A stretch of DNA of 64,000 bases from Entomortierella parvispora E1425 (taxonomy: Eukaryota > Fungi > Mortierellomycota): contig BQFW01000001.1 of assembly GCA_020891255.1 (NCBI GenBank), forward strand, positions 372,001-436,000, written 5' to 3'. Below are positions 1 through 61,504 of this stretch, piece by piece (within the stretch, counting starts at the first letter, position 1; each line of letters starts with the position of its first letter). A model generated the notes under the pieces. The model saw nothing but the letters and a program-made list of their open reading frames with translations, was not told where the DNA came from and did not search any database. A program made the position numbers and the translations under genes.

Positions 1-650
1 CGTCGTCCTTGAGTACCGCGATGAGGGAATGAATAGCTGGTTCCTGCAATGAAAACTGTTGGCCTAATACCTCTGCTGCGGAAATCCTCACTTGCCGGTC
101 GTCATCTTTGAGTGCAGCGATCAGGGACGTGATAGCTGACTCTGGTAATGAAGACTGCTTCCATAATGCCGATGCTGCAGAAGACTTGACGTTTTTATCT
201 TCATCCTTGAGTGCGGCGATGAGGGAATGAATTGCTGGTTCCAGGAATGAGGACTGCTTGTCTAATACCCTTGCTGCGGAAAACCGGACATCTTTATCAT
301 CATCCTTGAGTGCAGCGATGAGGGAATTGATAGCTGGTTCCGGGAATGAAAACTGTTTGCCTAACACCTCCTCTGCGGAAATCCTCACCTGCCGGTCGTC
401 ATCTTTGAGTGCAGCGATGAGGGAATTGATAGCTGGTCCCTGCAATAAAGACTGCTTGCCCGATGCCTCTACTGCTGAAGACCTGACTCGCCAATATTCA
501 TCCTTGAGTGCAGCGGTGAGGGAATGAATAGCTGGTTCCGGCAATGAAGACTGCTTGGCTATGCCGATACTGCAGAAGACTTGACGTTTTTATCGTCATC
601 CTCGAGTGCGGCGATGATGAGCTGCAACGCTGATTTCGACAGTAGGGAGC
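1..650 (-). repeat. 99-nt (33-aa) HEAT-repeat array of NLR1
   Basis: The motif tccttgagtgc or a close variant recurs near 6, 105, 204, 303, 402, 501 and 600. Units translate as KDDDKNVKSSAASALxKQSSLPExAIxSLIAAL. Confidence 0.93.
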
Positions 651-3600
651 GTGATCCTAAAGTATGTAAGAGTGAGGTTTTGCTCGAATGCGCTGAATTT
701 ATAGCTTCAACTAGGAGTGCCTCAGGGAACGACGGTCGACTGCCTAGCATGCTTCTACTGAAAATATTACGGCGCAAGCGTATCTCCAGGTGTAGCCATC
801 TTGCAAGCTCTGAGTCGTACGAAGCCACGACTGTCGGGTCCAATCGGGCCCGCGCTTCATGAAGGCAAGAGACTAGGATCTGCTGGTGGCGTCCTCCAAT
901 CAAATCCCGTGGCTCTCCTTGCAGAAGTTCAAAAAAATTGGCCAACGGGTCTCCAGCTAATAATCCTGCCACCATCGACCATACAATTTCATACTGAGGG
1001 TTGTATTTGTGATGGTGAACAAAGGCCGTCATCTCCCCCGTATCCATCATTCCAACTGAACATTGCTGAGGTTGAAAATGGCGCACTATCCATGTTGCCG
1101 CGAAATATTCTTGGAACGTCAGATGTAGGAAATGCCAGAGTCGTCGAGAATTGTAGTTTTTGAGATCCGCTGCCGAATCAGCCGTATGTAAAAACGACGT
1201 TTCTTTCATGTGCTCGACCAGGTGGGTAGGCGAAAGCTGTTGGCTAGCTGGTGTAGAGCTCTTCAGATCTTGAAAAGCAGAGCGCATGTCTTTTTCTTCG
1301 AACTCGATTTGGTGATGGTTGGTCATCCCTTTGAAGGCGAGATATCCAAGATGCTGCAGCTCAGTCGCCATCAGCTTGTCAATTTCCTCGGGTTCATAAC
1401 CATGGAGTTGTCGCTCAGTCAGCTCTATTCCACCATCAGTTTTTTTGAGCCGAAGTGCATCCTTGCACCAGAGTTTCCGCACCATTAGTTGATACAGCTG
1501 TGTCATGGTCACTGCCCCGCCATCTGTTGGGAGTGAATTCCAGCTGAAGCAGATCACGTCGAGCTGTACTGGGATGTTGGCGAGTCCTTGAATCAATGGC
1601 GTTTGTCGAATGAACTCCTGGACTGTCCTTGATGGCTCAGGATCGAGCACATTGACCACAAAATCCGTGACATTCTGTTGGCTGAATCCAACAGTTTCGA
1701 GCTCCAGATCAAGTGGTGGTAGTAGTTTGCTGTCCAAGCCAGAGGGTCTTGAGGTGATGATGACCTGTTGCCGCCCAAGTAACATCTTCAAGAAAGATCG
1801 GAAGGTGCTACTTTCGTTCCCTTCGGCCTCTGTGATAATCTCATCCAGACCGTCCAAGATGAAAAGAACCTTGCCCCTTTGAGCGCATGTCACAAGAGTG
1901 GTGGCGAGTGCCACTTGCTCTTGATTGAAGTCCTGAGAGACGAAAACCTTCTCGATAAATAGTCCTTCCAAGGTGCGGCTCTTGAGTCCCCTGAGATGAC
2001 GCAGCGGAATCCAGAGCACGACTTCGAAGAGATCCGTCCAGAGTCCATTCTGATGAGCATGAACGAGTTTCTTGCAAAGTGTCGATTTGCCAATGCCTGC
2101 TCGTCCTTGAACCAAGATCCTTTTAGGAACATCCTCCTTGCCATCCCGCAACTCGCGCTTGTTGAAGAGTTGTTCTAGAGGAATAAGCGACTGGGTGTCT
2201 GTGTTCCGTACCCTTTCGCCACTGGGCATCCGATGAAATACGGCCGCTTGCTCTTTGAGCTCCTGTTTCTCCTTCCGTCGATTTTCTGGTGCCTCCACAA
2301 TCGCGAGATTGACAAAGCATGTCCCCAGATCCAGCTCCTCGCCTGAAATTCTGAGGATATGCAGGTTGGGTGCGTGATAGTTCTTGAGGGCCGATTGAAT
2401 GTCACTCAAACTTGAGATTCGAGGGGCATCTGGTAGGTTCTCAACCTTTGCATGCCGACAGTTTCGATCCTGAACAGCTTTCAACAGTCTAGCCCTTGGC
2501 ACTGAATGCCTATCCGGATCCGTGAATTTGAGATTGATCCAAACTGGCGAATGTTGATCGGCAAAAGGTTCTAACTGTGTGTTCTTCCTTGTCATTTCTT
2601 CCAATAGCGTCCTGGCGGCTATATATGGAGCGAGAAAAAAAAACATTGGCATCAGGACTGAATATCTTTGATATGCTATTCCTGTTATTCCTTGACAGTC
2701 ATGGTGTATAGGGATCTCACCTTCAAACTGTATGACATTTCGGGATTCCACGATAGTGAGTACGTCAAAGATGACCTGATCAACCTCCTTCTGGCGATCC
2801 CAAAGTGAAGCATCCTTGTAGAGTGTTTCAATGAAGGCAATTGCCTCTCGCTGCATCTCCAGGCTCCATCGGTTATCAAGTGCAAACTGCCCAAGCAACT
2901 GGCAGATCCCCCATTGAAACATGAGTTCGTGTCGGCACGGTGTAGTGGTAACCAACGCCTTGAACTCCACTAGCCTTCCAGTATCGATATACGATTTGGC
3001 TTTACGAATGGCATGGTACCATGCGCTCTTGAACTTCAGGCACTCCTTGACTGTGAATGTTAGACTGCCATCGGCGCCTTTGATTGCATCATTCAAGACA
3101 GCCTTGAGATTGCCGATGCCAGCTTTTCCGGCATTGTAAAGTTTTTCCAGGCTTTCGAGCGTGTCCCTCAGGTCCGTTGGGTCAGGCACATTGGCCAGTC
3201 CTGCTCCAACATTCAATAAAAACCAGAATCGTCTGAATCCTGCATGCCAAATATCGTCATCATCAGGCACATTGAGCAGAGCCTGCGTGGCATAGTGAAC
3301 TTGAAATGTCAAGTAAGGGTGTTCGTTTGACTCGATCTCTCGAAGGAACTCCGTCAATGGTCCATGAAGGTTGACACGGTCGACATCTTTGATGTTGGCG
3401 TCCACCATCGCATCCAAAACACGCGAAACAGCAAGTAGCAGCGGATATCGATACTCTGGTGAGCGAGTAAGCTTGAGTCGCTTGAGCAGGCACCGAAGGA
3501 TACTCTCAAGGTCGTCCACGTTGAGGGTTCCTGGGGTGGCTCCTTGAATCGTAATTGCCAAGCCATTCAACGGATGCAACTGTAGAATCTCTGACTCGTT

Positions 3601-4564
3601 GACAGCGTCGATGAAAGTCGCGATGAGGAACTGAGAGTGCTCTTCACTGAGCACAGGGGCCAGTTGGACAACCTCAGCAACACTAGCCGCATCCTTCATA
3701 TTGTCCTTGGTAACTGCGTGGATGACATCGTCGACCATGGTCTCCAAGCGATCTTTCTCACCCGAATCATTCAAGGTGTCAAGTCGATACCTGAGATAAT
3801 CCTGAGAAAGATCGTTATTTTGAACTGACGGCTGCAAAAGTGCGAGACAGCAGGCGAGTTGCAGAGTAGTTTCCAGTTGCTCTCCTGGATCTGGCAGCCG
3901 ATGTAGGTTACGCTTGGGATTAACATTCGTACCAAAGAATGATGGAGATCCTAAGGCTGAACTTGCTCCATAACCGAGATGGCTGGTTGAGAGAGAGGAT
4001 GAGACGAATGGTGAGGCGTTGAGGTAGTGTTGACAGCTGCTGCGGCGGTAGTGGCAATAGAAGAGGGACTGGAGGCGTTGTTGTTTGTCAATGCTGAAGA
4101 GCTCCAGTGAGTGACTCCTCCTTGAGCGATTGCCGGAGAGAACCCTGGTCCTACCAAAGACGGTGCGATAACAGCAGGATGGAGCCTCATTCTCTCGTCG
4201 AGTTCTTGTCTAGTAGTTGTGCAATACCAAATGTTCAATGTAAGTAGAGTGCTTCCAAGATGCCGTTTCCTCAATGGGGAACAATAGTCAGCTACCTTAG
4301 GGCGGCAGCTCTCTTTCTGCACTTGTCTGCTTTTTCCTTCAGCAGTTCTCCTGAGAGATCCAGCACCACGGCAAGATTCAGGAATGCGGCAATCATCTCC
4401 TCCATATCCTTGGAATTGGTCCTCTTGACATCCACTTTGGCGAGGGTATTCTTTGCATTTTGATAATGCTTAATGACGTTGGGTTCGGAACCCATGGCTT
4501 TTCGAGCTTCCTCAGTGCTGGCTGTTGCCTGAGTTAAGGCCACTTGTGCAGTAAGATGCGGCAT
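1..4564 (-). pseudogene. NLR-like gene 1 (helical N-terminal exon - ARM-like domain - NACHT - HEAT repeats) with two 1-nt deletions; runs off the window start
   Basis: Exon 1 starts at ATG 4564; intron 4210-4295 (GT..AG). Frameshift near 3970 (AISV-AT-GASSALGSPSFF compared with the paralogues). Intron 2619-2720. Walker A QGRAGIGKST and Walker B LFILDGLDE. A deleted T at ~560 (GCA TTA GCC to GCA TAG) creates the stop at 559-561; HEAT repeats continue stop-free in another frame to position 1. Confidence 0.88.
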
Positions 4565-7770: not shown

Positions 7771-8143
7771 GGGCCCTAACAGAGGTACATTAAAGCTCGT
7801 CTTAGACTCAAACTGCAAACAAATAGACCTCGTGCAACAGTCAAATCAGACTGACCGTGCAGCGCCTTCACTTACAGCAAAGCCCCAAACAAATGGTCAA
7901 CAACAACCACTGCCACCACTGCCACCATTGCCACCACCACAAGCAACACTTCTCAACCTTTAGTATAAATAACCCAGACTTCACATCAATAAATAAACAT
8001 CATTCAATCTTCGTGTTCTTTCCTTGGCCTTTACTATTGCACAATCCTCTCTATTCATAGATAATAGATGCTCAAGTGAACAGCCATTTAATAGGAAAAA
8101 TAAAGAAACGAGATGTGGGCAGTTATAGTAGGGACCGTACTAC

Positions 8144-8467
8144 CTAGATGGACGTAATGCTCTGAGCGTTGCACGTCACATGAAAGTGACCTTGGTCAGC
8201 TATAACACCGTCATAAGCACTCTTTTCAGAGCAACAGTAGGATTTATCGCAGTTTTCATTCTCGATAATGATTGATTCACAATACTGCTTTTTGAGATCC
8301 CACTCTGAAAAACAATTAACACCCTCGGTTATTCTGCTCTGACATGTGGCTGCGACATCTGTAGATTCACCGAAAAAATAACAGTAATTTTGCTTAATGG
8401 GGTCGGCGGAGACATGTGTCGAAACGAAAAGACAGAAAACGAAGAAAGCCAAAAGATTGCGAGCCAT
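8144..8467 (-). CDS. Small secreted cysteine-rich protein, copy A (107 aa, 8 Cys in the mature region)
   Basis: Signal-peptide-like MARNLLAFFVFCLFVSTHVSA; Cys spacing shared with the 36450-36776 paralogue. Confidence 0.82.
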   Translation of the reverse strand: MARNLLAFFVFCLFVSTHVSADPIKQNYCYFFGESTDVAATCQSRITEGVNCFSEWDLKKQYCESIIIENENCDKSYCCSEKSAYDGVIADQGHFHVTCNAQSITSI

Positions 8468-8914
8468 TATGACAAAGGATGCGTGGTGTACGAAAAAAAG
8501 GAGTGTCAAGAAAATAGAATCCTATAGTATACAGTAAAAGATGATTGAGGATGAGATGAATAGATCATTTATGTTAATCGCTGTATTACAATGCAGTTGC
8601 GTCATTGCTGTTTGTAAATAACCGTATTATTTTGTTACCTTGAGGCTTCTTGTGAGGGCTCTTGTGACGATTCGTGTGGGGTTTCTGTTCTTTTGGCGAG
8701 TTGTATGGAGCTCTAGAGCTCTAGTGATGGAATGTATGAGGTTCTTGGAATAACTAGTTGTGTTGGTTCCTGAAAGTGGAGTGTAGTGAGTGCCTCAGTC
8801 GACGTCTTGAAAGTTGTTGGTTGATTGGGGGTGCGGGTTCCCCGAAGTCATACTCTTTTATACAAGAGGCGGTTCCTATGGTTTTTGCCTTTCCTATTGT
8901 GCAAGACCCCGAAT

Positions 8915-9135
8915 ACCCTTGACCTTTTGGTCTAATTTTCATCCCTTGACTTTTAGTCCAATTTTTTTGGTCCAATTATCATCCCCTGACTTTTTTCATC
9001 CCTTGACTCCCTTGACTTGCATGCCTTACTTTTTCCGTTTTTCCTATCCCTTGACCTTTTCTCATCCCATGTCCCTTGACTTTTTTCATTCCTTAGTTTT
9101 TCCTGTCCCTTGACCTTTTCTTCATCCCTTGATCT
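8915..9135 (+). repeat. Cluster of about 10 degenerate (T)nCATCCCTTGAC motifs
   Basis: Repeated atcccttgac/gtcccttgac motifs abut the TIR at 9152; duplicated at ~37220-37450. Confidence 0.75.
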
Positions 9136-9151
9136 TTTTCATCGCTTACAC

Positions 9152-9335
9152 TAGTGATTGTAACCGATTAAAATGACTTCCGGTCAAGCATTTTTTTGGT
9201 GCGTTTCGGTTAGTTTCTCATTTTTTTTTAGTTCATGGGCGGATTGACTGGTGGACAATCCCCTTGACCCTGCCAAACTAAAAAATGATAGCCATGGAAT
9301 CAGTTGACGGCCACCATGGTTAGCCAAGATGAGAA
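9152..9335 (+). mobile_element. Solo left end of a hAT-family element related to the 27653-34404 element
   Basis: Begins TAGTGATTGTAACCG like the full hAT and aligns with its first ~180 nt (ggccaccatggtta(a/g)ccaagatg). No matching right TIR was found. Confidence 0.75.
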
Positions 9336-10230
9336 GAGGGTCTCTTCTGTGGATTTGGTGCGAGTTTGAAATAATTACCAATAGCCAAAGAAGCAAACAA
9401 CCCCGGTTTATTTTCTTCCACCTCCAATTCACCGGCCTCTCCCACTTCCAAATCTCTCTCCTCCCTTACAAAGCACTCTCTTCCACTTCCATAGTACTCC
9501 CTTTTAAAGCAGTCTATTATGAAAATTTCTTGCTTTCTCTCTTTAATCCTGACCAAAAAAAAAAAAAAAAAAGGGTCGTATGTTAGTCCAGCTGAAAAGA
9601 GGGAATAACCAACAAAGTTCAACCGATTCAAAGATACTTACGGGCTTCCATGACATCTCCATGGCATTTCTTCTTGTTGGTTAGAGCCGGATGCGACTCA
9701 GGAACCAGGACCAAGGTGTTTTCATGATACCAGTCCTCAAACTCCGGACCCACAGAAGGCAAAGCTTTTGTGCATCCTTAAATGGAAATGTCCTTTGCAT
9801 GTTGCGCCTCCATTTCCCATTTCCCCATTTCCAACCGAGGATGCCATTATATATTAGCGTCGGTACAGTATACAGTACTCGTGGGGGAAGGTGTGTGTGT
9901 GTCCGGATTCCAACGAGGGGTATTATCGATGCAGGGACCACCAGGGACCGAGAAGGAGTGGGAAGGAAGGGTAGGAAAAGGGTGTCTGTGTACGTGTACG
10001 TGTACGTGCATCAATCCAAGTCACGTGTACATCTCAGTGACTCTTCCCCTGACAATCCATCTCTCACTCCATGCGAAAACCTGCTGCGTTCATCATCATC
10101 CCAATTTCCCAATCATGTCCGCCCATTCGCCCTTTCCAAGAGGCTGCATCAAAAGTCTCTACCTCTCTACCTCATAAACTGTCTCCCATTTGATGCTTCT
10201 GCACTCAGATGCGGCGAAAGATATGTTCAC

Positions 10231-11621: not shown

Positions 11622-14025
11622 TTCCCTTTTTTTTTTGTTAAGAATTAAAGAGAGAAAACAATAATTTTAATAATAGAGTGCTTTGAAAGGGAGTAGAAGT
11701 GGAAGAGAGTGCTTTCGAAGTGGGAAGAGAGTGCTATGGAAGTGGAAAAGAAGATTAGAAAAGGTAAGTTTTGAAAGAAAAAGAAAATGGTTTGTGGAAA
11801 GGATAAAGTGAGTTGGCGTACCAAGTCCCCCGATGTTTGTTATAGATGCTGACGACAGCGTGCCATCACCACATCCCATCGGCATCATGGATTTGTGGAG
11901 GAAACAAAGAGCAGTACCAAGTCCCCGATGTTCGCTGACGACTCTGAGCCACCACCTCATCACATCGGCATCATGGATTACCGCCCACTATCCTAACTAC
12001 ACTAGGGCTAAACTAACTAGTCTAGAAGCGAAGGAAGGGGGACGGAAGAAAAGGAAGTTTTCTCTCTTGATTCTTGTTTCTTGGTTCTTGTTACTTGTTT
12101 CTTGTTTCTTGGATGGGGGCCCCAAACCAAAGAGGGCAGGGAGGCAACTGCGCTCGAGAGGCAGGCCAGGCGGTCTTGTGGGCCAAAGGTCAAGTCTGAA
12201 AGTGTTGCACGACCTTGAGGCCGAGGCAGGTTTTGAGGGCCGAGGTCAAGCCATGAGAAGGCAGATTACTTTGAGGCCGAGGCTTGAGCTTGAAAGGGCA
12301 GACAAGTTTGTAGCCAGAGCCTTGGAAGGGCAGGCAGGTTTGCGGCCAAAGACTTGGAAGGGCAGGAGAGGTGGGCCGGGAGTTCAAGGCCATTGGGACC
12401 GGGGCCAAGGAGGGCAGGACCGAAGCTGAAGAGCCGATGTCGTCGGGCCGGAGACACTTGTTGCTGGCCGAGGGGAGGATGGCAGCATTGTGGTGATGTG
12501 CTTTGTGTGCTTTGTGTGCTTTGTGTGTGTGGAAGGGGAGTGAAGAAGAAATGAAGGATGAGGAGCAAAAAAAAGAGGGGAATCATGGGGGGTATTTGTA
12601 TGAAAGTGGATTGTTCGGGTGCCTTCTATCTGCTATCACTTGTCGACTGCGGTCTCAGATGCGATAGCAAAAGTCGATTGGTCTGCCATGGGGAAGACAG
12701 TCCTTGCTATCTCTGCGGCTCCAAGAAAGATGTGATAGCGAGAGAGCGACATGGCGACACGAGGGAGGGAGGAAATCGATTGGTCCGCTGTGAGGGAAGG
12801 ACGGAAGATGGATAGGAGAACAACAGTCATGAAGGACGGAAAGAAGGCGATTGGTCCGCCATCGTCAAAGGGAGGAAAGATAAGCAAACAGACGCGTTGA
12901 TTTTGGATGAAAGGAGGAAATAAGGGCCATGGATGAAAGCCACACGGAAGACGACGCGTTTGTTTTCTTTTTTTTTCCTCAAATTTGAAAAAACCAAAAA
13001 AAAATTGGCTGAAATTCATCTTTCATGGCAAAATGTCGCGTCTGTTTTCACTTAACTTCTCTCATCGCGTCGCATGGGGACCAGTCGACTTCAGTTCCCT
13101 TGTCCTCCTCCACTTTCATACAAATACCTCCCAGGATTCCCCTCTTTTTTTTGCTCCTCATCCTTCATTTCTTCTTCACTCCCCTTCCACACACACACAC
13201 ACACACAAAGCACACAGAGCACACAAAGCACACCACCTCAATGCTGCCATCCTGCCCTTGGCCAGCAACAAGTGTCTCCGATCCAACGATATCGGTTCTT
13301 CAACTTCGGTCCTGCCCTCCTTGGCCCCGGTCCCAATGGTCCTGATCCCCCGGCCCACCTCTCCTGCCCTTTCAAGGCTCTGGCTGCTAATCTGCCTGCC
13401 CTTTCAAGCTCAAGCCTCGGCCTCAAAGTTGTCTGCCTAACTCATGGCTTGACCTCGGCCCTCAAGACCTGCCTCGGCCACAAGACCGCATGGTCTGCCT
13501 CTCAAACGCAGTTACCTCCCTGCCCTCTTTGGTCTTGGGCCCCCCATCCAAGAAACAAGAAACAAGAACCAAGAAACAAGAATCAAAAGAGAGAAAACTT
13601 CCTTTTCTTCCGTCCCCCTTCCTTCGCTTCTAGACTAGTTAGTTTTTAGCCCTAGTGTAGTTAGGATAGTGGGCGGTAATTCATGATGCCGATGTGATGA
13701 GGTGATGGCTCAGAGTCGTCAGCGAACATCGGGGACTTGGTACTGCTCTTTGTTTCTTCCACAAATCCTTGCTTCCCGATGGGATGTGGTGATGGCACGC
13801 AGTCGTCAGCATCTATAACAAACATCGGGGGACTTGGTACGCCAACTCACCTTATCCCTTCCACAAACCATTTTTTTTCTTCGAAACTTACCTTTTCTAA
13901 TCTTTTCCACTTCCAAAGCACTCTCCTCCCTTCCAAAGCACTCTCTTCCCTTCCATAGTACTCCCTTTCAAAGCACTCTATTAAAATTCTTGTTTCTCTC
14001 TTTAATTCTGGCCAAAAAAAAGGAC
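11622..14025. repeat. Large inverted repeat: arms ~11622-12610 and ~13108-14025, spacer about 500 nt
   Basis: For example, tcctaactacactagggctaaactaactagtctagaagcgaagg (~11991-12034) is the reverse complement of ~13621-13667. The (GT)n and (CA)n tracts mirror each other. Weaker mirrored homology extends to ~11250 and ~14470. Confidence 0.92.
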
Positions 14026-17172: not shown

Positions 17173-19035
17173 GAGCACGCCTTCTCCAATTCAAACGGGA
17201 ATGGGAGGAGATGACAGATTCAACTTGGGTCAACAACATTGTCAGCAAGGGGTACTCGATCGTCTTCAGCAAACCACCGCCAATGCGCCTCCCACCAATC
17301 CACGATCCCTACACCACACCAGCGGAGAAGGAGGAAATAAACAAAGAGATCGTTTCTTTATTACAAAAAAGGGCCATAGAAGAATGCTCAGGCTGGGGAT
17401 ATTACAGCCGTCTATTCACAATACCCAAGAAGACAGGGGGCCTCCGCCCTGTCCTCAACCTTCGACCTCTCAACCAACACCTGAAGGCCCCACATTTCAA
17501 GATGGAGACGCTCACTCACATCTGCCAAATGTTGCGGCCGAAGGATTGGTTGACATCAATCGACTTAAGCGACGCCTTCCTCCACGTCGCCGTACAGCCG
17601 AAAAAGTCGACGCTACCTACGCTTCCGATGGCACGGGAAGACATATCAGTTCAGGACCCTTCCATTCGGTCTCTCACTGTCCCCTTACGTCTTCACCAAG
17701 ATCATACGACCCATCCTGCAGTGGGCACGCAAACAGGGGATCCGCATTTCAGCATATTTAGACGACATATTAGTTGCCGCAACCAGCAGAGAAGAGTCAG
17801 AAAGACACACTCTCATGGTACGTCAGAAGCTGGAACGACTGGGATTCCTCATTCAGAACGAGAAATCAATGCTTACGCCTTTGCAACAGATCAATCACCT
17901 GGGATTTCACATAGACACCGTCCAAATGTCACTGTCAGTCCCGGGGAACAAGATCCGAGACCTGAGGAGAGAAGCCAACAAGATGCTGCAGGCAGCAGCA
18001 GTCCCGCTGAAGAGATTGGCGTCCTTCATAGGGAGAGCGATGTCCATGACAGTGGCCATCTTTCCAGCACGACTAAAGACGCGCCGACTCATCCAAGCTC
18101 AGAACTCAGCATTAGCAAGGAACTGCCCATGGACGGAGTCTGTCACACTGGACCACCAATCGAAAGAGGATCTTCAATGGTGGTGCAAAAACCTGTCGAC
18201 ATGGAATGGTCAGGGATTCCTCCCCCAGAGGTCAGAGATCGATGTATTCACGGATGCATCTCAGGACGCATGGGGGATAGTCTACGAGGACGAGGAGATC
18301 TCGAAGACATGGACACAGGAGGAGCAACCGTATCACATCAATTACAAGGAATTGAAGGTGATATGGCATCTGATACACCTGCCGGACATGCGCGGCAGGA
18401 CAATCCAGGTAATCTGCGACAATACGACGGCAATTGCGCAGATAAACAAGTTTGGAGGGACCAAATCAAAGCGATTGCTGGACCTAGCAACACAAATTTG
18501 GGACTATTGCATCAAGACGGGAACCCGACTCATGACAACGTACGTACCGTCTCAGTTCAATCCAGCCGACTCACCATCGAGACGCATGACAGCACAGTTG
18601 GAGTGGTCGATCAACAACTCGTTCTATCGACAGCTAGACTCGACCTGGGGGCATCACTCAGTCGATCTATTCGCCACGGCAAAGAACGCGAAGACTCAAC
18701 GCTACGTCTCCTGGATGCACGAGGAGACAGCGTGGAGACAGGATGCGTTCAGCTTCAGTTGGAAGGACCTGGGCCGAGTCTACATCTGCCCACCGTGGTC
18801 ACTCCTCAACCGAGTCCTGGAGAAGATCAGAACGGACAAGGTGCAGGCGACAGTGATCACACCACAGTGGCCTGCTATGATTTGGTACCCTACAATCCAG
18901 GCCATGTCAACACACAGCCCAATCCCAGTACCGAGGACAATGGTACAACCCGCACCAGGAAACAGCCCACAGCCACTGGAGCGGAACCCCATGTGGCAGT
19001 TAACAGCGTGGAGCGTCGACGGCAGCAAGCTGTGA
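17142..19035 (+). CDS. DIRS RT - RNase H - adenine-methyltransferase-like ORF, interrupted by one extra A at 17601-17605
   Basis: PVGARLLQFKREW…FTIPKKTGGLRPVLNLRPLN…IDLSDAFLH in frame 3. After removing one A it reads SRRYLRF…LPFGLSLSP…AYLDDIL, then FTDASQDAWG (RNase H) and DLFAT…DAF…YICPPW (MTase-like). Confidence 0.92.
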
Positions 19036-20081
19036 CCACAGGGGCCGACGCAGGAGTCATTCGCCGATTGTTTGACTCCAAATCCGCTCAGGAAAGGAAC
19101 AAGAGCACATCGAGTCAACGAACATTCACGCAATGGATGCAGGAGAGAGGTCGACCACTAGAGGATACCTCACCTACGGACTTGATGAACTTCCTGAACT
19201 ATGGAGTGGAGATTAGGGCTTGGAAGCCGCAAACGGCCCGAGCCTACTTGTCATCAGTACTCAAACTCTTCCCGAGGGACCGTCAGGAAGAGTGGCGAGC
19301 GGATGAAAATCTGTCAGATTTTCTAAAGGTCATTGGTGCACACACACTCAAGCGGCTACGTCACGACGACGCGGATACGACACCTATCTTCATCGAGATC
19401 CTCAAGAAGGGTGAGAACAAGGGCCTAAACATTAGGCACTTGACATCGAAGACATGCTTCTTGCTGGGACTGGTAGGACTCCTTCGACCGGACGACTTGG
19501 CTTGTATAGACACAAAGCAGTGCCGAATTCGAGATGGAGTGCTGGAATTGACCATCGTCTCTCCCAAGGAACGTCGAGATGGACAACGCATTATCAAGAC
19601 CGTCTTGATACATCCGCACACAGATCCAATCTTTTGCCCGGTAGAAGTGTATCAGGAGTACCGTAGGCGTACTGAGAAACACGACGAACATGCAAGGCAG
19701 CAACACCCCAAGCTGGACAAGGAGTTGTTGGAGGTTGAAATAATACCCCTAATCAGGGAGATCAGCTATGGCAAATCGCCTCTGGGAGCAGAGAGAATCT
19801 CCAAGTACCTTGCCGTCCTCCTGGATCTGATGCCCAGAGAGAAGGGGCAACCCCGCCCAAAGGTCAGGGCGCTGGGAGCTACGAACGCCCTCAAGAAAGG
19901 GGTTCCGTTGGAGGAAGTGACCGTTCAAGGGAACTGGTCATCGCCTACCATGGTGGAGAACTACTATCGAATTTCAAGGACCCTCGTTAGCAACTTCACC
20001 AACACTCTTCTTCCCCGACATCTGGATTCACAGATAGAGTCCCTTGGAGGGGGAAGAATAATGTCTAGCGTTGCCGAATGA
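19036..20081 (+). CDS. DIRS tyrosine recombinase domain (C-terminal part of a long overlapping ORF)
   Basis: LLRPDDL (first Arg), CPV, PKVRALG (second Arg), GNW and NYYR (Tyr). The frame is open upstream across the RT/RH region. Confidence 0.88.
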
Positions 20082-31029: not shown

Positions 31030-31850
31030 TTTTCCAGGGTCATGACCCAGACCCCTGACGAGCAAGTGCTTGTTCCAATGAAAGGTGAGTAGATAGGGGG
31101 GCGAGAATGACTCATAATGAGAGTAACCAAGCCTGAATCCAGTGAAAGGTGAGTGGACAGGGAACCGGACAGAGACATAATGAACGAATCCACTTTTTTC
31201 CAGGGTCATGAGGAGCCAGGACATGCAAAAAAGGCGAGAGAACAAGGGAACCGGACAGAGACATAATGACATAATGAGATAATGAGGGAATCCACTTTTT
31301 TTCCGGGGACATGAGGAGCCAGGAAATGCAATGAAGGCGAGAGAACCAGGGAACTGGACAGAGACATTATGAGGGAATTCACTTTTTTTCCAGGGTCATG
31401 AGGAGCCAGGACATGCAAAGACGGCGAGAGAACAAGGGGACCGGACAGAGACATAATGAGATAATGAGGGAATGCCCTTTTTTTCCGGGGACATGAGGAG
31501 CCAGGAAATGCAATGAAGGCGAGAGAACCAGGGAACTGGACAGAGACATTATGAGGGAATTCACTTTTTTTCCAGGGTCATGAGGAGCCAGGACATGCAA
31601 AGACGGCGAGAGAACAAGGGGACCGGACAGAGACATAATGAGATAATGAGGGAATGCCCTTTTTTTCCGGGGTCATGAGGAGCCAGGAAATGCGATAAAG
31701 GCGAGAGAACCAGGGAACTGGACAGAGACATTATGAGGGAATTCACTTTTTTTCCAGGGTCATGAGGAGCCAGGACATGGAAAGAAGGCGAGAGAACAAG
31801 GGAACCGGACTGAGAAATAATCAGGGAATTCACTTTTTTTCCAGGGTCAT
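31030..31850 (+). repeat. Higher-order tandem array inside the hAT (alternating ~95 and ~87 nt monomers, ~182-nt dimer)
   Basis: ccagggtcatgaggagccaggacatg at ~31200, 31389, 31571 and 31752, alternating with ccgggg(a/t)catgaggagccaggaaatg at ~31302, 31484 and 31665. Confidence 0.92.
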
Positions 31851-35149: not shown

Positions 35150-36500
35150 AATGAGGGAGAGAATCTGAAGCGGGGCATGCCCAAACGTTTGCGTTTGACC
35201 AGGGGCGGTGTCCTGACGTGTGCCGTTCTTAATAGCGCAGAATTTTATTTTTTGACCTATATATCCCCACACTTTTCAAACTAGTGTGAGAGCAGAAAAA
35301 ATGGACAGGCAGGGGAAGGCCTTAAAGACAGGGGGATGGTGGGGAGGCGGGAAAGAATGAAATGGGAAACACCACAGCGACCAACCACGAGAAAAATTAT
35401 CCGACGCGACAACGTCATCCATGATCCTCCAACTCATCCAGCTCATGTGGGATATTTGGCAGATCAGAGTTGTCTGGAAGAGTTGGCACTGGCATACCGT
35501 CAAAGTCGGTTAGATTTTTGCCAACCAATTCCAGGAGAAGGGCCTGGACGTCCAACAGTGCCTTGTTAGCCGAGACACAGCAAACTCGTCAGTCTCATCG
35601 GCCGTAGTGGCTTCTCGTTCGCGAGGATCAAGGTCGAAGGCCAAATCGCACTGAAATGCGCGCCACAGTTCGCCAGGGTCTGTTGGATTGCAGTATGTGG
35701 GGATCATAAAGAATAGCCTCCGCAACTGATATCCTGTTTTGATGCGTGCGGCTGTTGACAGACATTGCTGCCACTCTTCATCGCTCTCGAGAAGTCCACG
35801 GGCGCGGCAGCATTCTTTGAAAGTGCTGTGAAGGACATCATCGAATGTTTTCAGATCGTCATATGACCTGGGACTCTCTACCGTAATCAAGAGCAACCGC
35901 AAGTAAAATAGCTCGCCGAAAGAAGGTTGTACAAAGATAAGTCTGCCAATAGCAAAACCTGTTTGCCTCGGCGTCCAGAACTTGCCGATCTTGTTGTGCA
36001 CATAGGCCCTCAGAAACTTGGGGTATGTCATCCGGGAGCTGTCTGGGTTCTTGCAACGGAAGCGCGTCAACGATCCTAGCATCTATAGCCCTGCCTGCAA
36101 CAAGCAGACTTCGTGCGACAGTCAAATCAAGCCGACCGTCTGTCGCCCCCTCCCACAACAAAGCGACCAATAAAAGGTCAACTACAGTACAACCATTAAC
36201 ACCGCTGACATTGATGCCACCACCACAACACCATGAACCCTCCACCCTCATATAAATACACCACACTTTCATACCAATAAACATTATTCATTACTCCCAC
36301 CTGCCTCCCCCTCTGTACCTATTACACGCATAGAGCTTGTCTTAGACTCAACCTCACTATTCACCGATAATAGATGCTTAAGTGAAAGGTCATTTAATGG
36401 GAAAAATAAAGAAACGAGATGTGGGCAGTTGTAGTAGGGACCGCACTGCCTAGAGGGACTTGATTCTCACAGCAGAGCACTTCGCCTGAAAGTGAGCTTG
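35150..36500. repeat. Direct duplication, partner at ~54185-55620 (Helitron relic plus SSP 3' end)
   Basis: gagaatctgaa…cccacacttttcaaactagtgtgagagcag…gaaacgagatgtgggcagtt is collinear at both sites. Confidence 0.9.
35510..36082 (-). mobile_element. Helitron RepHel fragment 1
   Basis: KFWTPRQTGFAIGRLIFVQPSFGELFYLRLLLITVESPRSYDDLKTFDDVLHSTFKECCRARGLLESDEEW…QLRRLF…CNPTDPGELW is the conserved region between the Rep and Pif1 helicase domains of Helitrons. Confidence 0.85.
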
Positions 36501-36776
36501 GTCAGCTATAGCACTGTCATAAGCACTCTTTTCAGTGCAACAGTAGGATGTGTCACAGCTTGCATTATCGGTAACGATTGTATCACAATATTGATTTGTG
36601 GTGACATCCCTCTCCGAAAAACAACTAATACCCTGGCTTATTCTACTCTCACATGTGCTACCGACGTCTGTAGATTCACCGAGAAAGTAACAGTAATTTT
36701 TCTCAGTGGCAGCGGCGGAGACATGCGTCGAAACGAAAAGACAGAAAACGAAGAAAGTCAAAAGATTGCGAGCCAT
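36450..36776 (-). CDS. Small secreted cysteine-rich protein, copy B (108 aa)
   Basis: Signal peptide differs from copy A at one residue; same 8-Cys scaffold. Confidence 0.82.
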   Translation of the reverse strand: MARNLLTFFVFCLFVSTHVSAAATEKNYCYFLGESTDVGSTCESRISQGISCFSERDVTTNQYCDTIVTDNASCDTSYCCTEKSAYDSAIADQAHFQAKCSAVRIKSL

Positions 36777-37458
36777 TATGACAAAGGATGAGTGGTGTAC
36801 GAAAAAAAGGAGTGCTAAGAAAATAGAATCCTATAGTATACAGTAAAAGATGATTGAGGATGAGATGAATAGATCATTTATGTTAATCGCTGTATTACAA
36901 TGCAGTTGCGTCATTGCTGTTTGTAAATAACCGTATTATTATGATGTTGTTACCTTGAGGCGTCTTGTGAGGGCTCTTGTGACGATTCGTGTGGGGTTTC
37001 TGTTCTTTTGGCGAGTTGTATGGAGTTCTAGTGATGGAATGTATGAGGTTCTTGGAATAACTAGTTGTGTTGGTTCCTGAAAGTGGAGTGTAGTGAGTGC
37101 CTCAGTCGACGTCTTGAAAGTTGTTGGTTGATTGGGGGTGCGGGTTCCCCGAAGTCATACTCTTTTATACAAGAAGCGGTTCCTGTGGTTTTTGCCTTTC
37201 CTGTTGTGCAAGATCCCGAATACCCTTGACTTTTTGGTCTAATTTTCATCCCTTGACTTTTAGTCCAATTTTTTTGGTCCAATTATCATCCCCTGACTTT
37301 TTTCATCCCTTGACTCCCTTGACTTTCATGCCTTACTTTTTCCGTTTTTCCTATCCCTTGACCTTTTCTCATCCCATGTCCCTTGATTTTTTTCATGCCT
37401 TAGTTTTTCCTGTCCCTTGACCTTTTCTTCATCCCTTGATCTTTTTCATCCCTTACAC

Positions 37459-37640
37459 TAGTGATTGTAACCGATTAAAATGACTTCCGGTCAAGCATTT
37501 TTTGGTGCGTTTTCGGTTAGTTTCTCATTTTTTTTTAGTTCATGGGCGGATTGACTGGTGGACAATCCCCTTGACCCTGCCAAACTAAAAAAATGATAAC
37601 CATGGAATCAGTTGACGGCCACCATGGTTAGCCAAGATGA
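37459..37640 (+). mobile_element. Solo hAT-family left end (duplicate of 9152)
   Basis: TAGTGATTGTAACCGATTAAAATG in the same context as 9152. Confidence 0.75.
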
Positions 37641-38549
37641 GAAGAGGGTCTCTTCTGTGGATTTGGAGCGAGTTTGAAATAATTACCAGTGGCTGTGCTG
37701 TGAAAAGGAGAGGAGGAGAAAAACAAAAAAGAGGACTACAAAACACCATAGAACTAAACAACCCCGGTTTATCCTTTTCCACTTCCAATGCACCCTCTTC
37801 CACTTCCAAATCACTCTCCTCCCTTCCAGAGCACTCTCTTCCACTTCCATAGCACCCCCTTTTAAAGCACTCTATTAAAATTTTTGTTTTCTCTCTTTAA
37901 TTCTGACCAAAAAAAATTAAGACTTCAAAAAAAAAAAAAGAACTAATGTACGAAGTTGGTAACGAATAAACATGAGATCCTTTGACCCTCTACTAAAGCT
38001 GACTGTATGAATGATCTTTTTTGAAAGGGACTAAGGCAGCTAAGGCAGCAATTGTGAAGGAGATCATCCCTCTTGGACCTCAGTAGTCTGCGCAAGTGCT
38101 GCCAAACGCGCCATGGTATGAGAATTGAGAGATGCATCGTGTCAATGACTGAGAGATGGAGCGATGGAGTGAGTGGAAGACAAATGTGCATGCATGTGCA
38201 TGAATGAATGGAATGCAGGAAGAAGGATGGAGAGATGGAATGGAGGCATGGGGAGAATGAACACCAAGGTGGTGAACGCGCTTCGCCCAAAGATCCGCGC
38301 TTCGCCCAAAGAGCAAAGAAAAGAGGAAAGAGCCCATTTTTCCATTTTTTTTTCTTTTGTCTTCTTTGTCCTTCTGGTCCTGTGGACCTCTGGCCCTCAT
38401 CCTTCTGAGTCAACATATCCATTTCTCATCTCCATTGAATCTGCTCCCTGTTCATCCTGCCTGCCCCCTCTGATATTGCGCATCGTTGTACCACTGGGCT
38501 GGTTTCCATTAGCTGTAAGGGCCAACAACTGCCATATGGATCCAAGGTG

Positions 38550-40645
38550 ATGATTCCGATCCTGGACAGCCTTGATCAGTGAGATATTCGTGCTGTAATG
38601 ACCAGACGAACTTGCTGACTTGTCATTAATGCAAAACGGCAGTTGCTGATGGGACGTTGAGTTCAGATGTGTGTTCAGTTTCCTCACTTCTTCCAGTAAT
38701 GACTTGGCCACTAAAACCGAAACAGAGAGACAAAAAACGCGTCAGGATCTTTACCTGTCGCATGTTTTGATTTTTACATGTGATATGGGGTTGGCATATT
38801 GTTCGTACATACCTTCAAAGTGCATGTCATTGTTGGATAACACGTTGATAAGCACGTCAAAGACGACCTGATCAATCTTTTCCTGCCGAATCCAAAGTCC
38901 ATTGTCCATATAGAGAGCTCCAAGGAAAGAAATTGCATCTTGCCTGGAGTTCAGGCTCCACTGGGTATGGACTGCAAACTGGCCAAGTAGCTGGCAGATT
39001 CCCCATTGAAATATGAACTTGTGTCGGCACGGCGTAGTTGTAACCAGCTCCTTGAATTGCACGAGTCGGCCAGTTTCAATATACCATTCTGCTGTTCGGA
39101 GGGCGCGGTACCAAGCACTCTTAAACTTCAGCCCTTCCTTCACTGTGAATGTAGAAGTCCCACCATCCTCGATTGTTCTCAGAATGCCTTTGAGGTTCCT
39201 GACGCCTGCTTTGCCAACGTCATAGAGTTTCTCCAAGCCTTCGAGTATGTCTTTGAGTTCCCTCGGGTCAGGTATTTTGGCCAATCCTGCGCCGCCTTTA
39301 AGCACCAGCCATAGTCGTCTGAATCCTGCATGCCAGATATCATCATCGTCAGACACATTGAGCAATGCCTGGGTAGCGTTGGCTTGGAATGCCAAATAAG
39401 GGTTATCACTCGACTCTGACCCTTGAAGAAGTTCTGACAATGGTCCATGAAGGTTGACGCGATCGACATCTCCGACATCGGCATCCACCATTGCGTCCAG
39501 AACCCGCGATGCTGCCAGCAGCAGGATATGGTATTGACGGTCCATAGAGTGGATAGATTGCAGTCGCCTGTGCAGGCACCGGAGAATGGTTACAAGGTCG
39601 TTTGGTTCCATGGATCCTGGCGCTGCTCCCTGAATCGCCTTAGCCAACCCATCCAGAGAATGCAAATGTAGAATCTCTGACTCATTCACGGTGTCGATGA
39701 GCGTTTTGATGAGAAATCGCGAATGATCTCAGTTGAGCACAGGAGCCAAATGGATAACCTCGGCGATTGCAGTAGCATTCTTCATAATGTCCTTTGCAAA
39801 TGACTGAATGACTTGAACGGACAAGCGTTCCAGGCGTTCTTTCTCCTCCGAGTCATTCAAGGTGTTGAGTCGCCACTTGAGCTCATCTGGCGGAAGCTTG
39901 TCGTCTTGAAGCGATGGTTGTAAAAGAGCAAGACAATAGGCGAGTTGTCGTGTGCTCCCCAACGACTCGCCCTTACTAGGCAATGGGAAAAAAGGGAACT
40001 CAGGAACCACATTCTCACTGAAGAATGATGGAGACCCCGAGTCCACAGTTCCCACCACAATTGAAACAGCTGCCTGAGAGGAGAGTGTGGGCAAGTACTG
40101 AGGAGCGGAGGCAGCGCTAGACATAGTTTCAGTGGAGGTGCTGCAAAAAGTGGCAGTAGAGGCAGAGTTGATTGTTGCTGCTGAGGAGCTCCGGTAGTTG
40201 ATTCCTGCTTGGGCGATCGCTGTAGAGAATCCTGCCCCCATAAGAGATGGCGCGATGGTGGCTGCATAAAACCTCATTCTCTCATCGCGTAATTGCCTGG
40301 CAGGAATACAAATCCATATGGTCAGTATACAGCGTGGCTTCTCGATGCTGACAAGAGACAAAACCCCTCAACATACCTCAAAGGATCTGCTTGCAGTCTA
40401 CACTTGGTAGCCTTTTCCTGAAATTGTTTTCCCGCATGATCAAGTGCCGCGGCGAGGTCTAGGAACACAACAATCATCTCCTCCAGATGGGTGGGGTCCG
40501 TTCTCATAACATCGACGTTGGTGAGGGCCTTCTTTGCAGCCCGATAGTGCTTCATGACCTCAAACTCAGAACCTCGAGCTTTTCGAACCCCTTCGGTGTT
40601 GGTTTTTGCTTGCATCAAAGCATCCTGTGCAGAAAGATAGGGCAT
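38550..40645 (-). pseudogene. NLR-like gene 2, 5' fragment (helical exon and ARM-like domain), with a nonsense codon and truncated before the NACHT
   Basis: ATG 40645; introns 40297-40376 and 38711-38812. In-frame TGA at 39729-39731 where NLR3 has Arg (APVLSRDHSRF). Homology stops after AVQDRN (~38550) at a repeat shared with 14090-14620. Confidence 0.88.
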
Positions 40646-41499
40646 ATCGAGCTTTCTACAAAACAGTTCGCAGGGTATAAAGTACAGCTTAGGAAACTGT
40701 TAGTTTAGAGTCTCGTTCAAGCTGTAGACTCTGGACGGTACCTTGGAGGGTGTTCCCGTCATCAACGAGTGTAGGTCTGGAAAGCAGTGAGAATGAGTAA
40801 AAGATTGTTCAGTACAAAGATCGAATGACGAGTCAGTAAAAGGAGGATGTGCAAAGGGAAGGCAGGAAAAAATCGTCGGGACCAACTTGTCAGGAAACAA
40901 AAGAGATGAGATGCCCGTCCCTCTTGCCCCAGAAATTCTCCAACCACGCCGCTCGGGTCGAATCGATTGTGAGCATCTGCGTAATGGACAAGTGAGATTG
41001 CTTGTGCGACGCGACAGGCCTCGTACTTAACCACCTGTTGTTGTGCAAACAAATAGACCTCGTGCAACAGTCAAATCAGACTGACCGTGCAGCGCCTTCA
41101 CTCACAGCAGAGCCACAAACAAAGGGTCAACTACAACCACTACCACCATTGCCACCATTGCCACCACCGCAACCTTTAGTATAAATACCTCGGACTTCAT
41201 ATCAGGGCATGGGAAGCAGCCATGCAGGAGGCCCGACTCACCTAGTTGGTGGCGCCAACTTTGACGAGGTGCAAAAGGGCGTGTCCTTGCGCGGTATCTC
41301 TCCAACACAAAGCATGCACTGTGATGGCTCTGTTAGGGTCATGTCTGGTCCGATACAAAGAGCATAAGGGAAAGGGAAAGTGCGGGAAGGAAAGCCGTGC
41401 AGTTGGAGGTGCAAGCATGTGGGTTGGTGGCAACGACCATCAGGGCGAAAAAAAGAAATCACGTGCATTCATCGATATGTGGCACACGCCCCCTGTTCC

Positions 41500-42910: not shown

Positions 42911-43130
42911 TTGTTCCACTCGGACCCAGCCCAACCTTACTGTAGGAGTACAGTTTTCACTTTGGATACAATCGAGGTGAAAAGACATAGTGCCAGACGC
43001 GTGGGACTGAAGCTCTAAATCAAAAAATGAAAAGATAACATAGTTAATAGGCACATTTGTCCATTCGCATTGAAAACATCCTAAATTTAACATCGATACC
43101 AACAAAAGGGGCCGCGCTGGATAATAACAA

Positions 43131-43790
43131 GGCGGTGTGGCGCGCCCGGCCATGATATGCCCAAGGGGCATAACACATATGCCGGACGGCGCACCACGAT
43201 ACTGTACCTTTAACTGCCGGAAGTAGTTCCGGGCGCAGTTATAATGCAAGACCATCATGACATGCAGGAATGGCTACAGATACATCTGGCGCACCCAGCC
43301 ATGATATACCGAAAGGGTATGACACATATGCAGGACGGGGCACCACGATACTGTCTCTAACTGCCGGAAGTAGTTCCGGGCGCAGTTATAACCATCACGA
43401 CACGCAGGAATGGCCACAGAGATACATCCTGCCGAGAAGCATGGTGATCACACCTCTGCGTTTGCGTAGTGTAGATGTAGAAGAAAAACGGTGCCAATCG
43501 TCACTTCAAAGAGCATTACAAAGAGAAAAAAAAAATATAAAGGGACGCCCTGGACACTAACAGGGCGGTGTGGCGCGCCCGGCCATGATATACCCAAGGG
43601 GCATAACACATATGCCGGACGGCGCACCACGATACTCTACCTTTAACTGCCGGAAGTAGTTCCGGGCGCAGTTATAACGCAAGACCATCATGACCTGCAG
43701 GAATGGCTTAGAGATACATCTGGAGCGCCTGACCATTATATACCGAAAGGGTACCACAAATATGCAGGACGGACCCTCAGTGGCTCTGAT
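43131..43790 (+). repeat. Hairpin-rich tandem repeat (~145-150 nt monomers, 432-nt duplication)
   Basis: TAACTGCCGGAAGTAGTTCCGGGCGCAGTTA at ~43210, ~43358 and ~43644; ggcggtgtggcgcgcccggcc at 43131 and 43563. Confidence 0.85.
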
Positions 43791-51996: not shown

Positions 51997-52609
51997 CCTC
52001 TCGTCCCTTGCTTGCCTAATGGAAGTACAACTTTGCCTGTTTAGCACAGATATAGGAACTCACAAGCAGTACCTACCCAATTCTCATAAAAAAATATTAA
52101 AGAAAGAATAAACCTATTATCAGTCCGAGGTGAAAATTGGTGTTGACTGGGTGTGAAAATCTCATCAGAATTCTGTCTCACGCCCTTCCAACCCCGTTAG
52201 AATGGCCCCGAGCGCTGTTTCCTGTCATCTTCCGGAGTGAAAGATGCGGCTCCTGGCATTCTCAGTCCCCGTGCGCACTGAGTTACCGCTGAGTCTTCCT
52301 CCCCCGTTCTCTTTGGCGACTCGAAAATCTCTGTCTGCCTTTATAAATGCAAACTCGACTCCCATCATCTTGAAGACCCTTTCACCTTTGACAACAGAGG
52401 CAGATGTGGAGGGCATCTCCTTCTATGAACTCCACTTTGTAGTTGGACATGACTCGCGGGAAGTCAGGGAAAACAAATCGACCCACCCTTTGGTGGCGTG
52501 TGACTGACTTCCAAGTGAAACCGAACCACACGAATCGAGAAGTCTGGGCTCGAAATGCTGCATTCTTACATCTTCATTGCATCACCATCGCACATCTAAC
52601 TCCATTGCA

Positions 52610-55110: not shown

Positions 55111-55508
55111 CCTAGCATCTATAGCCCTGCCTGCAACAAGCAGACTTCGTGCGACAGTCAAATCAGGCCGACCGTCTGTCGCCCCCGCCCACAACAAAGC
55201 CACCAACAAAAGGTCAACTACAACCATTGACACCACTGCTACTGTTGCCACCACCACGACACCATGAACCCACCACCCTCATATAAATACACCACACTTT
55301 CATACCAATAAACATTATTCACTACTCCAACCTTGTCCCTGTCCTTGTCCTTGTCCTGGTCACTTGCCTCCCCCTCTGTACATATTACACGCATAGAGCT
55401 TATCTGAGACTCAACCTCAATATTCACCGATAATAGATACTTAAGTGAACGGCCATTTAATAGGAAAAATAAAGAAACGAGATGTGGGCAGTTATAGTAG
55501 GGGCCGTA

Positions 55509-55621
55509 CTACTTAGGTGGAGGTAATGTCTGAGCGTTGCACGTCACATGAAAGTGACCTTGGTCAACTATAGCACTGTCATAAGAACTCTTTTCAGAGC
55601 AACAGTAGGATGTATCGCAGT
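55509..55621 (-). pseudogene. Small secreted cysteine-rich protein, copy C: C-terminal remnant interrupted by an LTR
   Basis: CDTSYCCSEKSSYDSAIVDQGHFHVTCNAQ; homology to copies A and B ends at ~55621. Confidence 0.8.
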
Positions 55622-61117: not shown

Positions 61118-61504
61118 TCCTCTATTCCAAGGACAGGTAAACCATGGCTTCTCCACCAGAGGTCCAGGCAGGGGCATTCCTTGTATTTACAAGGCGCAAG
61201 CAAGGTCCGGATCCAGTAGGGGGATCCAGAGAGCATAAAAAAACCTGCCCACCACACATCTGGCACCAGAAACAAAAGTCCAGCCAATTTAACGCAGCAT
61301 TCTCCTCTCCCTTATAGATAAAGACCTTTCAGTCCTCTATTCCAAGGACAGGTAAACCATGGCTTCTCCACCAGAGGTCCAGGCAGGGGCATTCCTTGTA
61401 TTTACAAGGCGCAAGCAAGGTCCGGATCCAGTAGGGGGATCCAGAGAGCATAAAAAAACCTGCCCACCACACATCTGGCACCAGAAACAAAAGTCCAGCC
61501 AATT
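61118..61504 (+). repeat. Perfect 172-bp direct repeats (61118-61289 and 61333-61504) with a 43-bp spacer
   Basis: tcctctattccaaggacagg…aaagtccagccaatt occurs twice. Confidence 0.92.

Follow-up and report, generated by a model that had tools for sequence, protein, structure and literature searches.

Two related genes for small, cysteine-rich proteins in Entomortierella parvispora have nearly identical upstream DNA and signal peptides, while their mature proteins differ at 43% of residues. Which process could have made one part of a gene so much more divergent than the DNA beside it? A first-pass annotation of the window, as we call the whole 64-kb stretch of DNA analysed here, had proposed an arms race, with diversifying selection pulling recent duplicates apart. 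We show here that the silent sites, the flanks further downstream, relatives in other genomes and a third, broken copy of the gene together point elsewhere.

The window is eukaryotic, and an EF-1alpha sequence that matches exactly assigns the genome to E. parvispora (Mortierellomycota). All three copies of the gene are on the minus strand. Gene A (8144-8467, or 8147-8467 without the stop codon) is a single-exon reading frame of 107 amino acids whose translation matches the family profile with an E-value of 9e-40. Its predicted signal peptide, MARNLLAFFVFCLFVSTHVSA (8405-8467), has a charged n-region, a 13-residue hydrophobic core and the residues V-S-A immediately before the mature part, and cleavage is predicted after this VSA. 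The translated mature protein (8147-8404) has 86 amino acids and eight cysteines. Gene B (36450-36776, or 36453-36776 without the stop codon) is also intact, with 108 amino acids and eight cysteines, and is preceded by its own promoter, 5'UTR and putative intron (36777-37688). Their N-terminal signal sequences suggest that both proteins are secreted. Copy C (55131-55624) is a 5'-truncated pseudogene without promoter, signal peptide or N-terminal half, whose coding remnant comprises the last 34 codons (55521-55624). A fourth remnant, on the plus strand (41044-41204), has lost its coding part and consists of a 3'-flank segment only, 85% identical to A 7814-7988.

A six-frame search of the whole genome with the protein and with the family profile found A, B and C as the only copies. 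A weak match on contig 9 (E-value of 0.04) was dropped as a further copy, as the family profile did not recover it. We also considered whether copy C retains a diverged N-terminal half, since a profile match begins at position 24 and the stretch 'FLAFVGTH' is present; this DNA lies in or adjoins a transposon with more than 40 copies, and the idea was rejected. The same fate befell the reading of the C-terminal 'TLPPPK' of copy C as ancestral, suggested by the end 'TVPPPGP' of a metagenomic relative (D, below). In the nucleotide alignment, this tail follows from a 1-nt deletion that is private to C when compared with A, B, D and the Umbelopsis relative U.

We compared A and B segment by segment. 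Identity is high in the far upstream DNA (A 9161-9380; 212 of 220 positions), across an array of short motifs (A 8880-9160; 274 of 281), in the TATA box and first 5'UTR exon (228 of 232), over the putative 5'UTR intron (119 of 119 aligned positions), in the second 5'UTR exon (50 of 53) and in the signal peptide (61 of 63 nt). For the whole upstream stretch this amounts to 883 identical positions out of 905, with segments at 96-100% over some 913 nt. The young block thus defined pairs A 8405-9380 with B 36714-37688 on the minus strand, at 96-100% identity and a Jukes-Cantor (JC) distance of about 0.025. The last differing position within it is 8417, and the old block starts to differ at 8403, so that the step is sharp and A-B differences begin at the first mature codon, which is the predicted cleavage junction. 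In the mature part, 207 of 258 nucleotides and 49 of 87 residues are shared, with all eight cysteines fixed.

Downstream of the stop codon, an island of 82 nt in the 3'UTR (8062-8143), which includes a conserved T-rich, ATTAAA-like stretch, is 90% identical between A and B (74 of 82 positions) and about 94% between A and C. Beyond it, the next roughly 250 nt (7813-8061) are 64% identical between A and B (159 of 248), while B and C are about 90% identical there. This far 3' flank has diverged further than the mature coding part: JC distances between A and B are 0.025 over the block of about 970 nt, 0.23 in the mature part and 0.49 in the far 3' flank. The pattern is a young 5' block beside an old 3' block and not a divergent island between conserved flanks. 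The hand counts of the first-pass annotation hold up well, namely the 49 shared residues and eight fixed cysteines, the single difference among 21 signal-peptide residues and the eight or so differences just past the stop, and its near-identical upstream stretch of about 650 nt proved to be longer. Its picture of two conserved flanks stands for the 5' side but fails on the 3' side beyond the 82-nt island. The young block has just two full copies in the whole genome, and for this reason we discarded the possibility that it is a transposon.

If the duplicates were as young as the upstream block, about 2.5% diverged, silent sites of the mature part should be young as well. They are not. The Nei-Gojobori method (NG86) gave dS 0.258, dN 0.223 and omega 0.86 for the mature parts of A and B, YN00 gave dS 0.288 and dN 0.219, and maximum likelihood gave dS 0.235 and dN 0.229. 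Omega thus ranged from 0.76 to 0.98 across the three methods, and bootstrapping over codons placed it between 0.41 and 1.99, with dS between 0.12 and 0.47. Synonymous differences number 11 at 50 sites in the mature part against 22 at 905 sites (0.024) upstream (Fisher's exact test, p=2.2e-7), a roughly tenfold excess over the flanks. A count that needs no substitution model agrees, as 8 of the 49 unchanged mature residues are encoded by different codons, compared with 1 of 20 in the signal peptide. Four-fold degenerate sites, of which 1 of 12 differs between A and B, are too few to be of use. A tenfold age difference between silent sites and the adjoining DNA cannot come from selection on amino acids, and the segments must therefore differ in age. 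Synonymous and non-synonymous sites of the mature part have diverged alike (dS 0.24-0.29, dN about 0.22), an outcome that the first-pass annotation had itself set against its proposal, and diversifying selection is not supported as the cause of the inverted pattern.

With omega at about 0.5-1.2 in all pairs of the family, the mature part evolves fast, as the first-pass annotation had proposed. dN did not significantly exceed dS, either between A and B (omega 0.86) or in the other pairs (0.47-1.19). The A-B value and its wide interval are compatible with positive selection or with its absence, and an omega near 1 despite eight invariant cysteines may leave room for individual sites above 1. All selection estimates are pairwise, as four sequences with DNA are too few for site models. 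The signal-peptide region is conserved in four genomes, with omega of 0.2-0.5 and 81-89% nucleotide identity between genomes, which points to purifying selection.

Relatives in other genomes provided a control. Searches of large protein collections found only four, all named 'hypothetical': U, from Umbelopsis sp. AD052 (locus L007); D, a metagenome protein whose true start is at residue 32 (loci L005/L006); a six-cysteine protein with two copies in Basidiobolus meristosporus (loci L008/L009); and a six-cysteine metagenome protein. A literature search by the accessions of these relatives found no paper. D and U come from different genomes and have diverged about as far as A and B, with mature parts 78% identical, dS 0.23-0.28 and omega 0.9-1.2. 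Their flanks are 72% identical in the motif array, 79% in the first 5'UTR exon, 81% in both the intron and the second exon and 70% in the 3' flank. The inverted conservation pattern is thus absent from this pair of homologues, which are unable to convert each other, and because the D-U flanks have diverged as much as the coding part, flank identity of 96-100% is peculiar to copies that share a nucleus. The Basidiobolus pair has the ordinary, opposite pattern. Its coding sequences differ at 4 of 303 nt, with four synonymous and no non-synonymous changes, and its flanks are about 8-10% diverged.

These controls bear directly on the arms-race interpretation. A near-identical signal peptide and flanks beside a mature protein with a fixed cysteine scaffold, a divergence that starts exactly at the predicted cleavage site and omega estimates of 0.86-0.98, which are high for a structured protein, would all be expected from it. 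It does not account for the tenfold silent divergence or the old far 3' flank, nor for a D-U pair without the pattern, a Basidiobolus pair without a single amino acid change and an omega interval that reaches down to 0.41. We therefore consider it very unlikely that A and B are recent duplicates driven apart in this way.

The upstream block has a layout of its own. The core promoter and 5'UTR of A (minus strand, 8468-8862), an arrangement also found at L005/L006 and L007, begin with the TATA box TATAAAAG (8855-8862). A probable first 5'UTR exon extends down to 8639, followed by a putative intron that begins with GTAAC and ends with TATAG (8522-8638) and by a presumed second exon (8468-8521). 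The TATA box, the ATG-free first exon and the ATG-containing putative intron of the form GTAA...TAG are common to all four loci, which supports a 5'UTR intron in A and B as a likely prediction. Further upstream is an array of the motif TCAAGGGA (8915-9267 in A, with seven exact copies at 8942-9132; 37222-37575 in B; both minus strand), together with the variants TCAAGGGT, TCAGGGGA and TCAAGGGG. A and B each have seven exact copies and several variants, all in gene orientation. The whole window contains 15 exact copies, against 3.75 expected, and 14 of them are in these two promoters, as are 8 of 13 triple clusters genome-wide, compared with none for the reversed motif as a control. Copies of CAAGGGA are found at corresponding positions in L006 (~280-450) and L007 (~9520-9630), where the surroundings can barely be aligned. 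An array 80-400 nt upstream of the TATA box is thus kept in three genomes, making it a candidate cis-regulatory module.

Could such a promoter be old in both genes and have been held identical by very strong purifying selection on regulatory sequence? The conservation of its layout across genomes, with TATA box, CAAGGGA array and 5'UTR intron, would be consistent with this. The same segments are just 43-81% identical between genomes, however, and the putative intron of about 117 nt, at 100% between A and B, is at 70-81% between genomes. It is implausible that an intron would be constrained at every base, and we regard the idea that A and B are uniformly old as highly improbable.

Copy C, which the first-pass annotation had suspected of being a mosaic because it has QGHFHVTCNAQ in common with A but CDTSYCC and SAI in common with B, provides an independent line of evidence. 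Of the informative sites between the 5' end of C, which corresponds to A 8256, and roughly A 8062, 24 join C with A and 5 join it with B. Downstream of that point to the end of homology, the numbers are 8 and 57, respectively, and the two segments differ significantly (Fisher's exact test, p=4.7e-11), so the suspicion was well founded. B and C continue to be alike, at 90%, for a further 1.4 kb downstream. Three pairings therefore follow one another in adjoining segments: A with B upstream, then A with C over the 3' coding part, then B with C downstream. Nothing other than recombination or conversion among paralogues gives such discordance, and sequence has thus been exchanged among the copies.

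The genealogies along copy C also argue against targeted hypermutation of the mature-coding segment in recent duplicates, which would raise dS and dN jointly. A mutator mechanism of this kind was once proposed for conopeptides, and it would fit both the similar dS and dN of the mature part and the sharp 5' boundary. Mutation alone does not produce discordant genealogies, though, and the diverged zone runs about 250 nt into non-coding 3' DNA, while D and U show equal divergence in coding sequence and flanks. We give this explanation hardly any credence.

The genomic setting would favour such exchange. A, B and C are within a segmentally duplicated stretch, A and B being 28 kb apart in the same orientation, and this stretch contains a hAT transposase and a DIRS element; duplicated, transposon-rich DNA of this kind is prone to ectopic exchange. 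The stretch also includes three NLR-type paralogues with an ARM_5 N-terminal part (559-4212, 38751-40661 and 46693-52047). A NACHT domain was detected in two of them, the gene at 38751-40661 being an ARM_5-only fragment, and two of the three have HEAT-type repeats. Each copy or remnant of the secreted-protein gene is within 2-4 kb of one of these NLR-type genes.

Several repeats surround the copies. Copy C ends about 45 nt from a young transposon that begins at about 55670 (55670-57000+) and has more than 40 genome copies at 97% identity; it adjoins the truncated end of C, and its 347-aa reading frame (55779-56822) has no Pfam match. A repeat of about 120 nt, with copies 82-88% identical, occurs at 9442-9562, 11627-11750, 13902-14021 and 37795-37916. 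It bounds the duplicated A/B unit on its upstream side, has two more copies nearby, one of them inverted, and may have mediated the duplications. Elsewhere in the window, two direct repeats of 172 nt (61118-61289 and 61333-61504) are 100% identical and 43 nt apart, and tandem arrays with units of about 90-190 nt and 80-92% identity are found at 31136-31850 and 43106-43772.

Differing segment ages, exchange of sequence among copies and flank conservation specific to paralogues are thus shown at this locus. We think it likely that A and B are old paralogues and that ectopic gene conversion or unequal recombination has recently made their 5' blocks alike, conversion being the molecular mechanism that the sequences suggest. 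A and B would be old paralogues of a tandem region, with a coding dS of about 0.26 that matches a pair from two separate genomes. A block of about 970 nt, comprising the array promoter, TATA box, 5'UTR with its putative intron and signal peptide, would then have been copied between them. A and B might instead stem from a recent duplication of the whole gene, after which the 3' part of one copy was overwritten from a third, C-like copy. The tract would end between 8417 and 8404, where identity collapses at the junction of signal and mature parts. One reason for this position could be that the conserved signal peptide offers homology through which a tract can run, which the mature part would not. 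Alternatively, the boundary could be set by selection against conversions that erase the difference between A and B. On average, the mature part would be nearly neutral, with its cysteine scaffold and about 16 positions fixed.

That the tract stops at the cleavage site and that a 90% island brackets the mature part on its 3' side could mean that selection keeps A and B different. Selection that rejects conversion into the mature domain would be a form of the idea put forward in the first-pass annotation.

What the mature protein does is a separate matter. Pfam searches with A and B returned nothing at E<=10, a sequence search of the PDB with the family profile gave only noise (E-value of 0.3), and a search of the ESM Atlas by features gave no usable match. 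Together with the four hypothetical relatives, these results uphold the first-pass description of an undescribed family of small, secreted, cysteine-rich proteins. The cysteine spacing is C-x12-C-x9-C-x10/11-C-x9-C-x4-CC-x19-C, with a single CC pair, and 16 positions are invariant across six sequences, six of them cysteines. In the Basidiobolus member and in one metagenome member, precisely the second and sixth cysteines are missing. As these two are present or absent together, they may pair as the fourth disulfide of the eight-cysteine members. The mature proteins are acidic, with a net charge of -5 to -7, which speaks against cationic membrane-active or antimicrobial peptides.

With six mature sequences as input, AlphaFold2 gave a best model (pLDDT 82.4, pTM 0.72) that should be read with caution, as the remaining four scored 36-57; an earlier model from three sequences that included the signal peptide had a pLDDT of 39.5. 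The best model, the one confident model of five, predicts strands at residues 5-12, 25-33, 42-44, 54-58 and 77-81, a long helix at 61-73 and a four-residue helix at 21-24. Searching the ESM Atlas by shape gave TM-scores of 0.42-0.51 to generic ACT/NIL/EF-G-like domains, and Foldseek found no match in the PDB at E<=0.001. In an exhaustive fold search the top match was the KP6 alpha toxin (1kp6_A; 64 aligned residues, rmsd 3.2), with a VIA-align Z of 3.4 that is below the tool's meaningful level and tied with generic split beta-alpha-beta folds. Most likely, though we say so tentatively, the protein acts outside the cell in interference or interaction, as killer toxins and effectors do.

The similarity of the E. 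parvispora and Umbelopsis loci extends beyond the coding sequence. Both 8150-8900 and 36489-37202 of the window align with L007 9646-10318, and the gene, 5'UTR and putative intron share about 70% DNA identity. In the non-coding parts, A and U have 67-71% identity over the TATA box, 5'UTR and intron; for the 82 nt at the start of the 3' flank it is 57%. These values are not far below those of D and U (70-81%). dS in the mature part between Mortierellomycota and Mucoromycota is 0.46-0.82. Silent sites and introns are expected to be saturated between fungal phyla. Given this expectation, the moderate dS and the non-coding identity of about 70% make a transfer between soil fungi reasonable. L007 is a true Umbelopsis contig, in which the transporter encoded next to the gene is 99% identical to its U. 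vinacea counterpart. The 9.6 kb of this contig beside the gene matched nothing in the E. parvispora genome at DNA level, in a search with the tool that did recover the gene, 5'UTR and intron at 70%. These alignments suggest horizontal transfer of the gene between an Umbelopsis-like fungus and Entomortierella. GC content is 41-44% at the A and B loci, 48-52% in the host and 43.6% at the Umbelopsis locus, a difference too weak to support transfer by itself. The patchy distribution of the family is weak evidence as well, because small genes are often left unannotated.

The upstream neighbour of the Umbelopsis gene (L007 6323-8086) has 32-44% protein identity to the DIRS element at 18415-20012 of the window. 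The family thus lies near DIRS-type elements in Entomortierella and Umbelopsis alike.

Taken together, the locus could represent a whole gene cassette, from CAAGGGA-array promoter and 5'UTR with intron to signal peptide and coding sequence, transferred horizontally between an Umbelopsis-like fungus (Mucoromycota) and Entomortierella, encoding an interference protein with a new fold, in which selection stops conversion at the cleavage site. This full combination we regard as speculative and rather unlikely. If true, conversion would keep a shared cassette for expression and secretion while selection preserves two different mature proteins. For the interpretation of similar loci, conserved flanks beside a divergent mature peptide in paralogues are not by themselves evidence of an arms race, and silent-site divergence and a between-genome control are needed before that inference is drawn. 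The analysis also defines a very small family of secreted, cysteine-rich proteins that has no name so far, from the early-diverging fungi Entomortierella, Umbelopsis and Basidiobolus, together with a conserved promoter motif array and a putative 5'UTR intron. The locus also raises a testable case of gene transfer from fungus to fungus across phyla. Unless transfer or toxin activity is confirmed, current understanding is unchanged.

How does the family compare with known systems? The KP6 fold is arranged as beta1-H-beta2-beta3-H-beta4, with two antiparallel helices on one face of a four-stranded sheet, and KP6-like fungal effectors exist beside the KP6 alpha toxin of Ustilago maydis virus P6 (bioRxiv 10.1101/2024.10.14.618152). 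Like these, the family protein is small and fungal, and it is predicted to be secreted and to fold into an alpha/beta sandwich with several disulfides. Unlike KP6, it has one long helix in the model instead of two antiparallel ones, it is acidic and there is no sequence similarity between them. A Z of 3.4 and no Foldseek match at E<=0.001 amount to no clear structural similarity to KP6 alpha or Zt-KP6-1, and with one long helix in the model we do not class the protein as KP6-like. Hydrophobins and CFEM proteins are also small and secreted with eight cysteines, as in A and B. Hydrophobins have two CC pairs where A and B have one, and membership in either group was dismissed on this single CC pair and on the Pfam result.

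Closer parallels are found in the way the gene parts evolve. Ectopic gene conversion and concerted evolution of gene parts have been described for many tandem and dispersed paralogues. A and B resemble these cases in that a near-identical tract abuts old divergence, dS outside the tract greatly exceeds divergence inside it, a third copy has discordant segments and the copies are in the same orientation on one chromosome, in a duplicated, transposon-rich region. They differ in the extent of the tract, which takes in the regulatory sequence and secretion signal and ends at the cleavage site, so that two distinct mature proteins share a single expression cassette. Genes for conotoxins and snake-venom PLA2 combine a conserved signal peptide and UTRs with a hypervariable mature toxin, and A and B share with them the conserved signal and non-coding parts, the fast mature part and the fixed cysteine framework. 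In A and B, however, omega is not above 1 (0.86, with an interval of 0.41-1.99), no intron separates the signal and mature parts, and the contrast, which is absent between genomes, is explained by the different ages of the segments.
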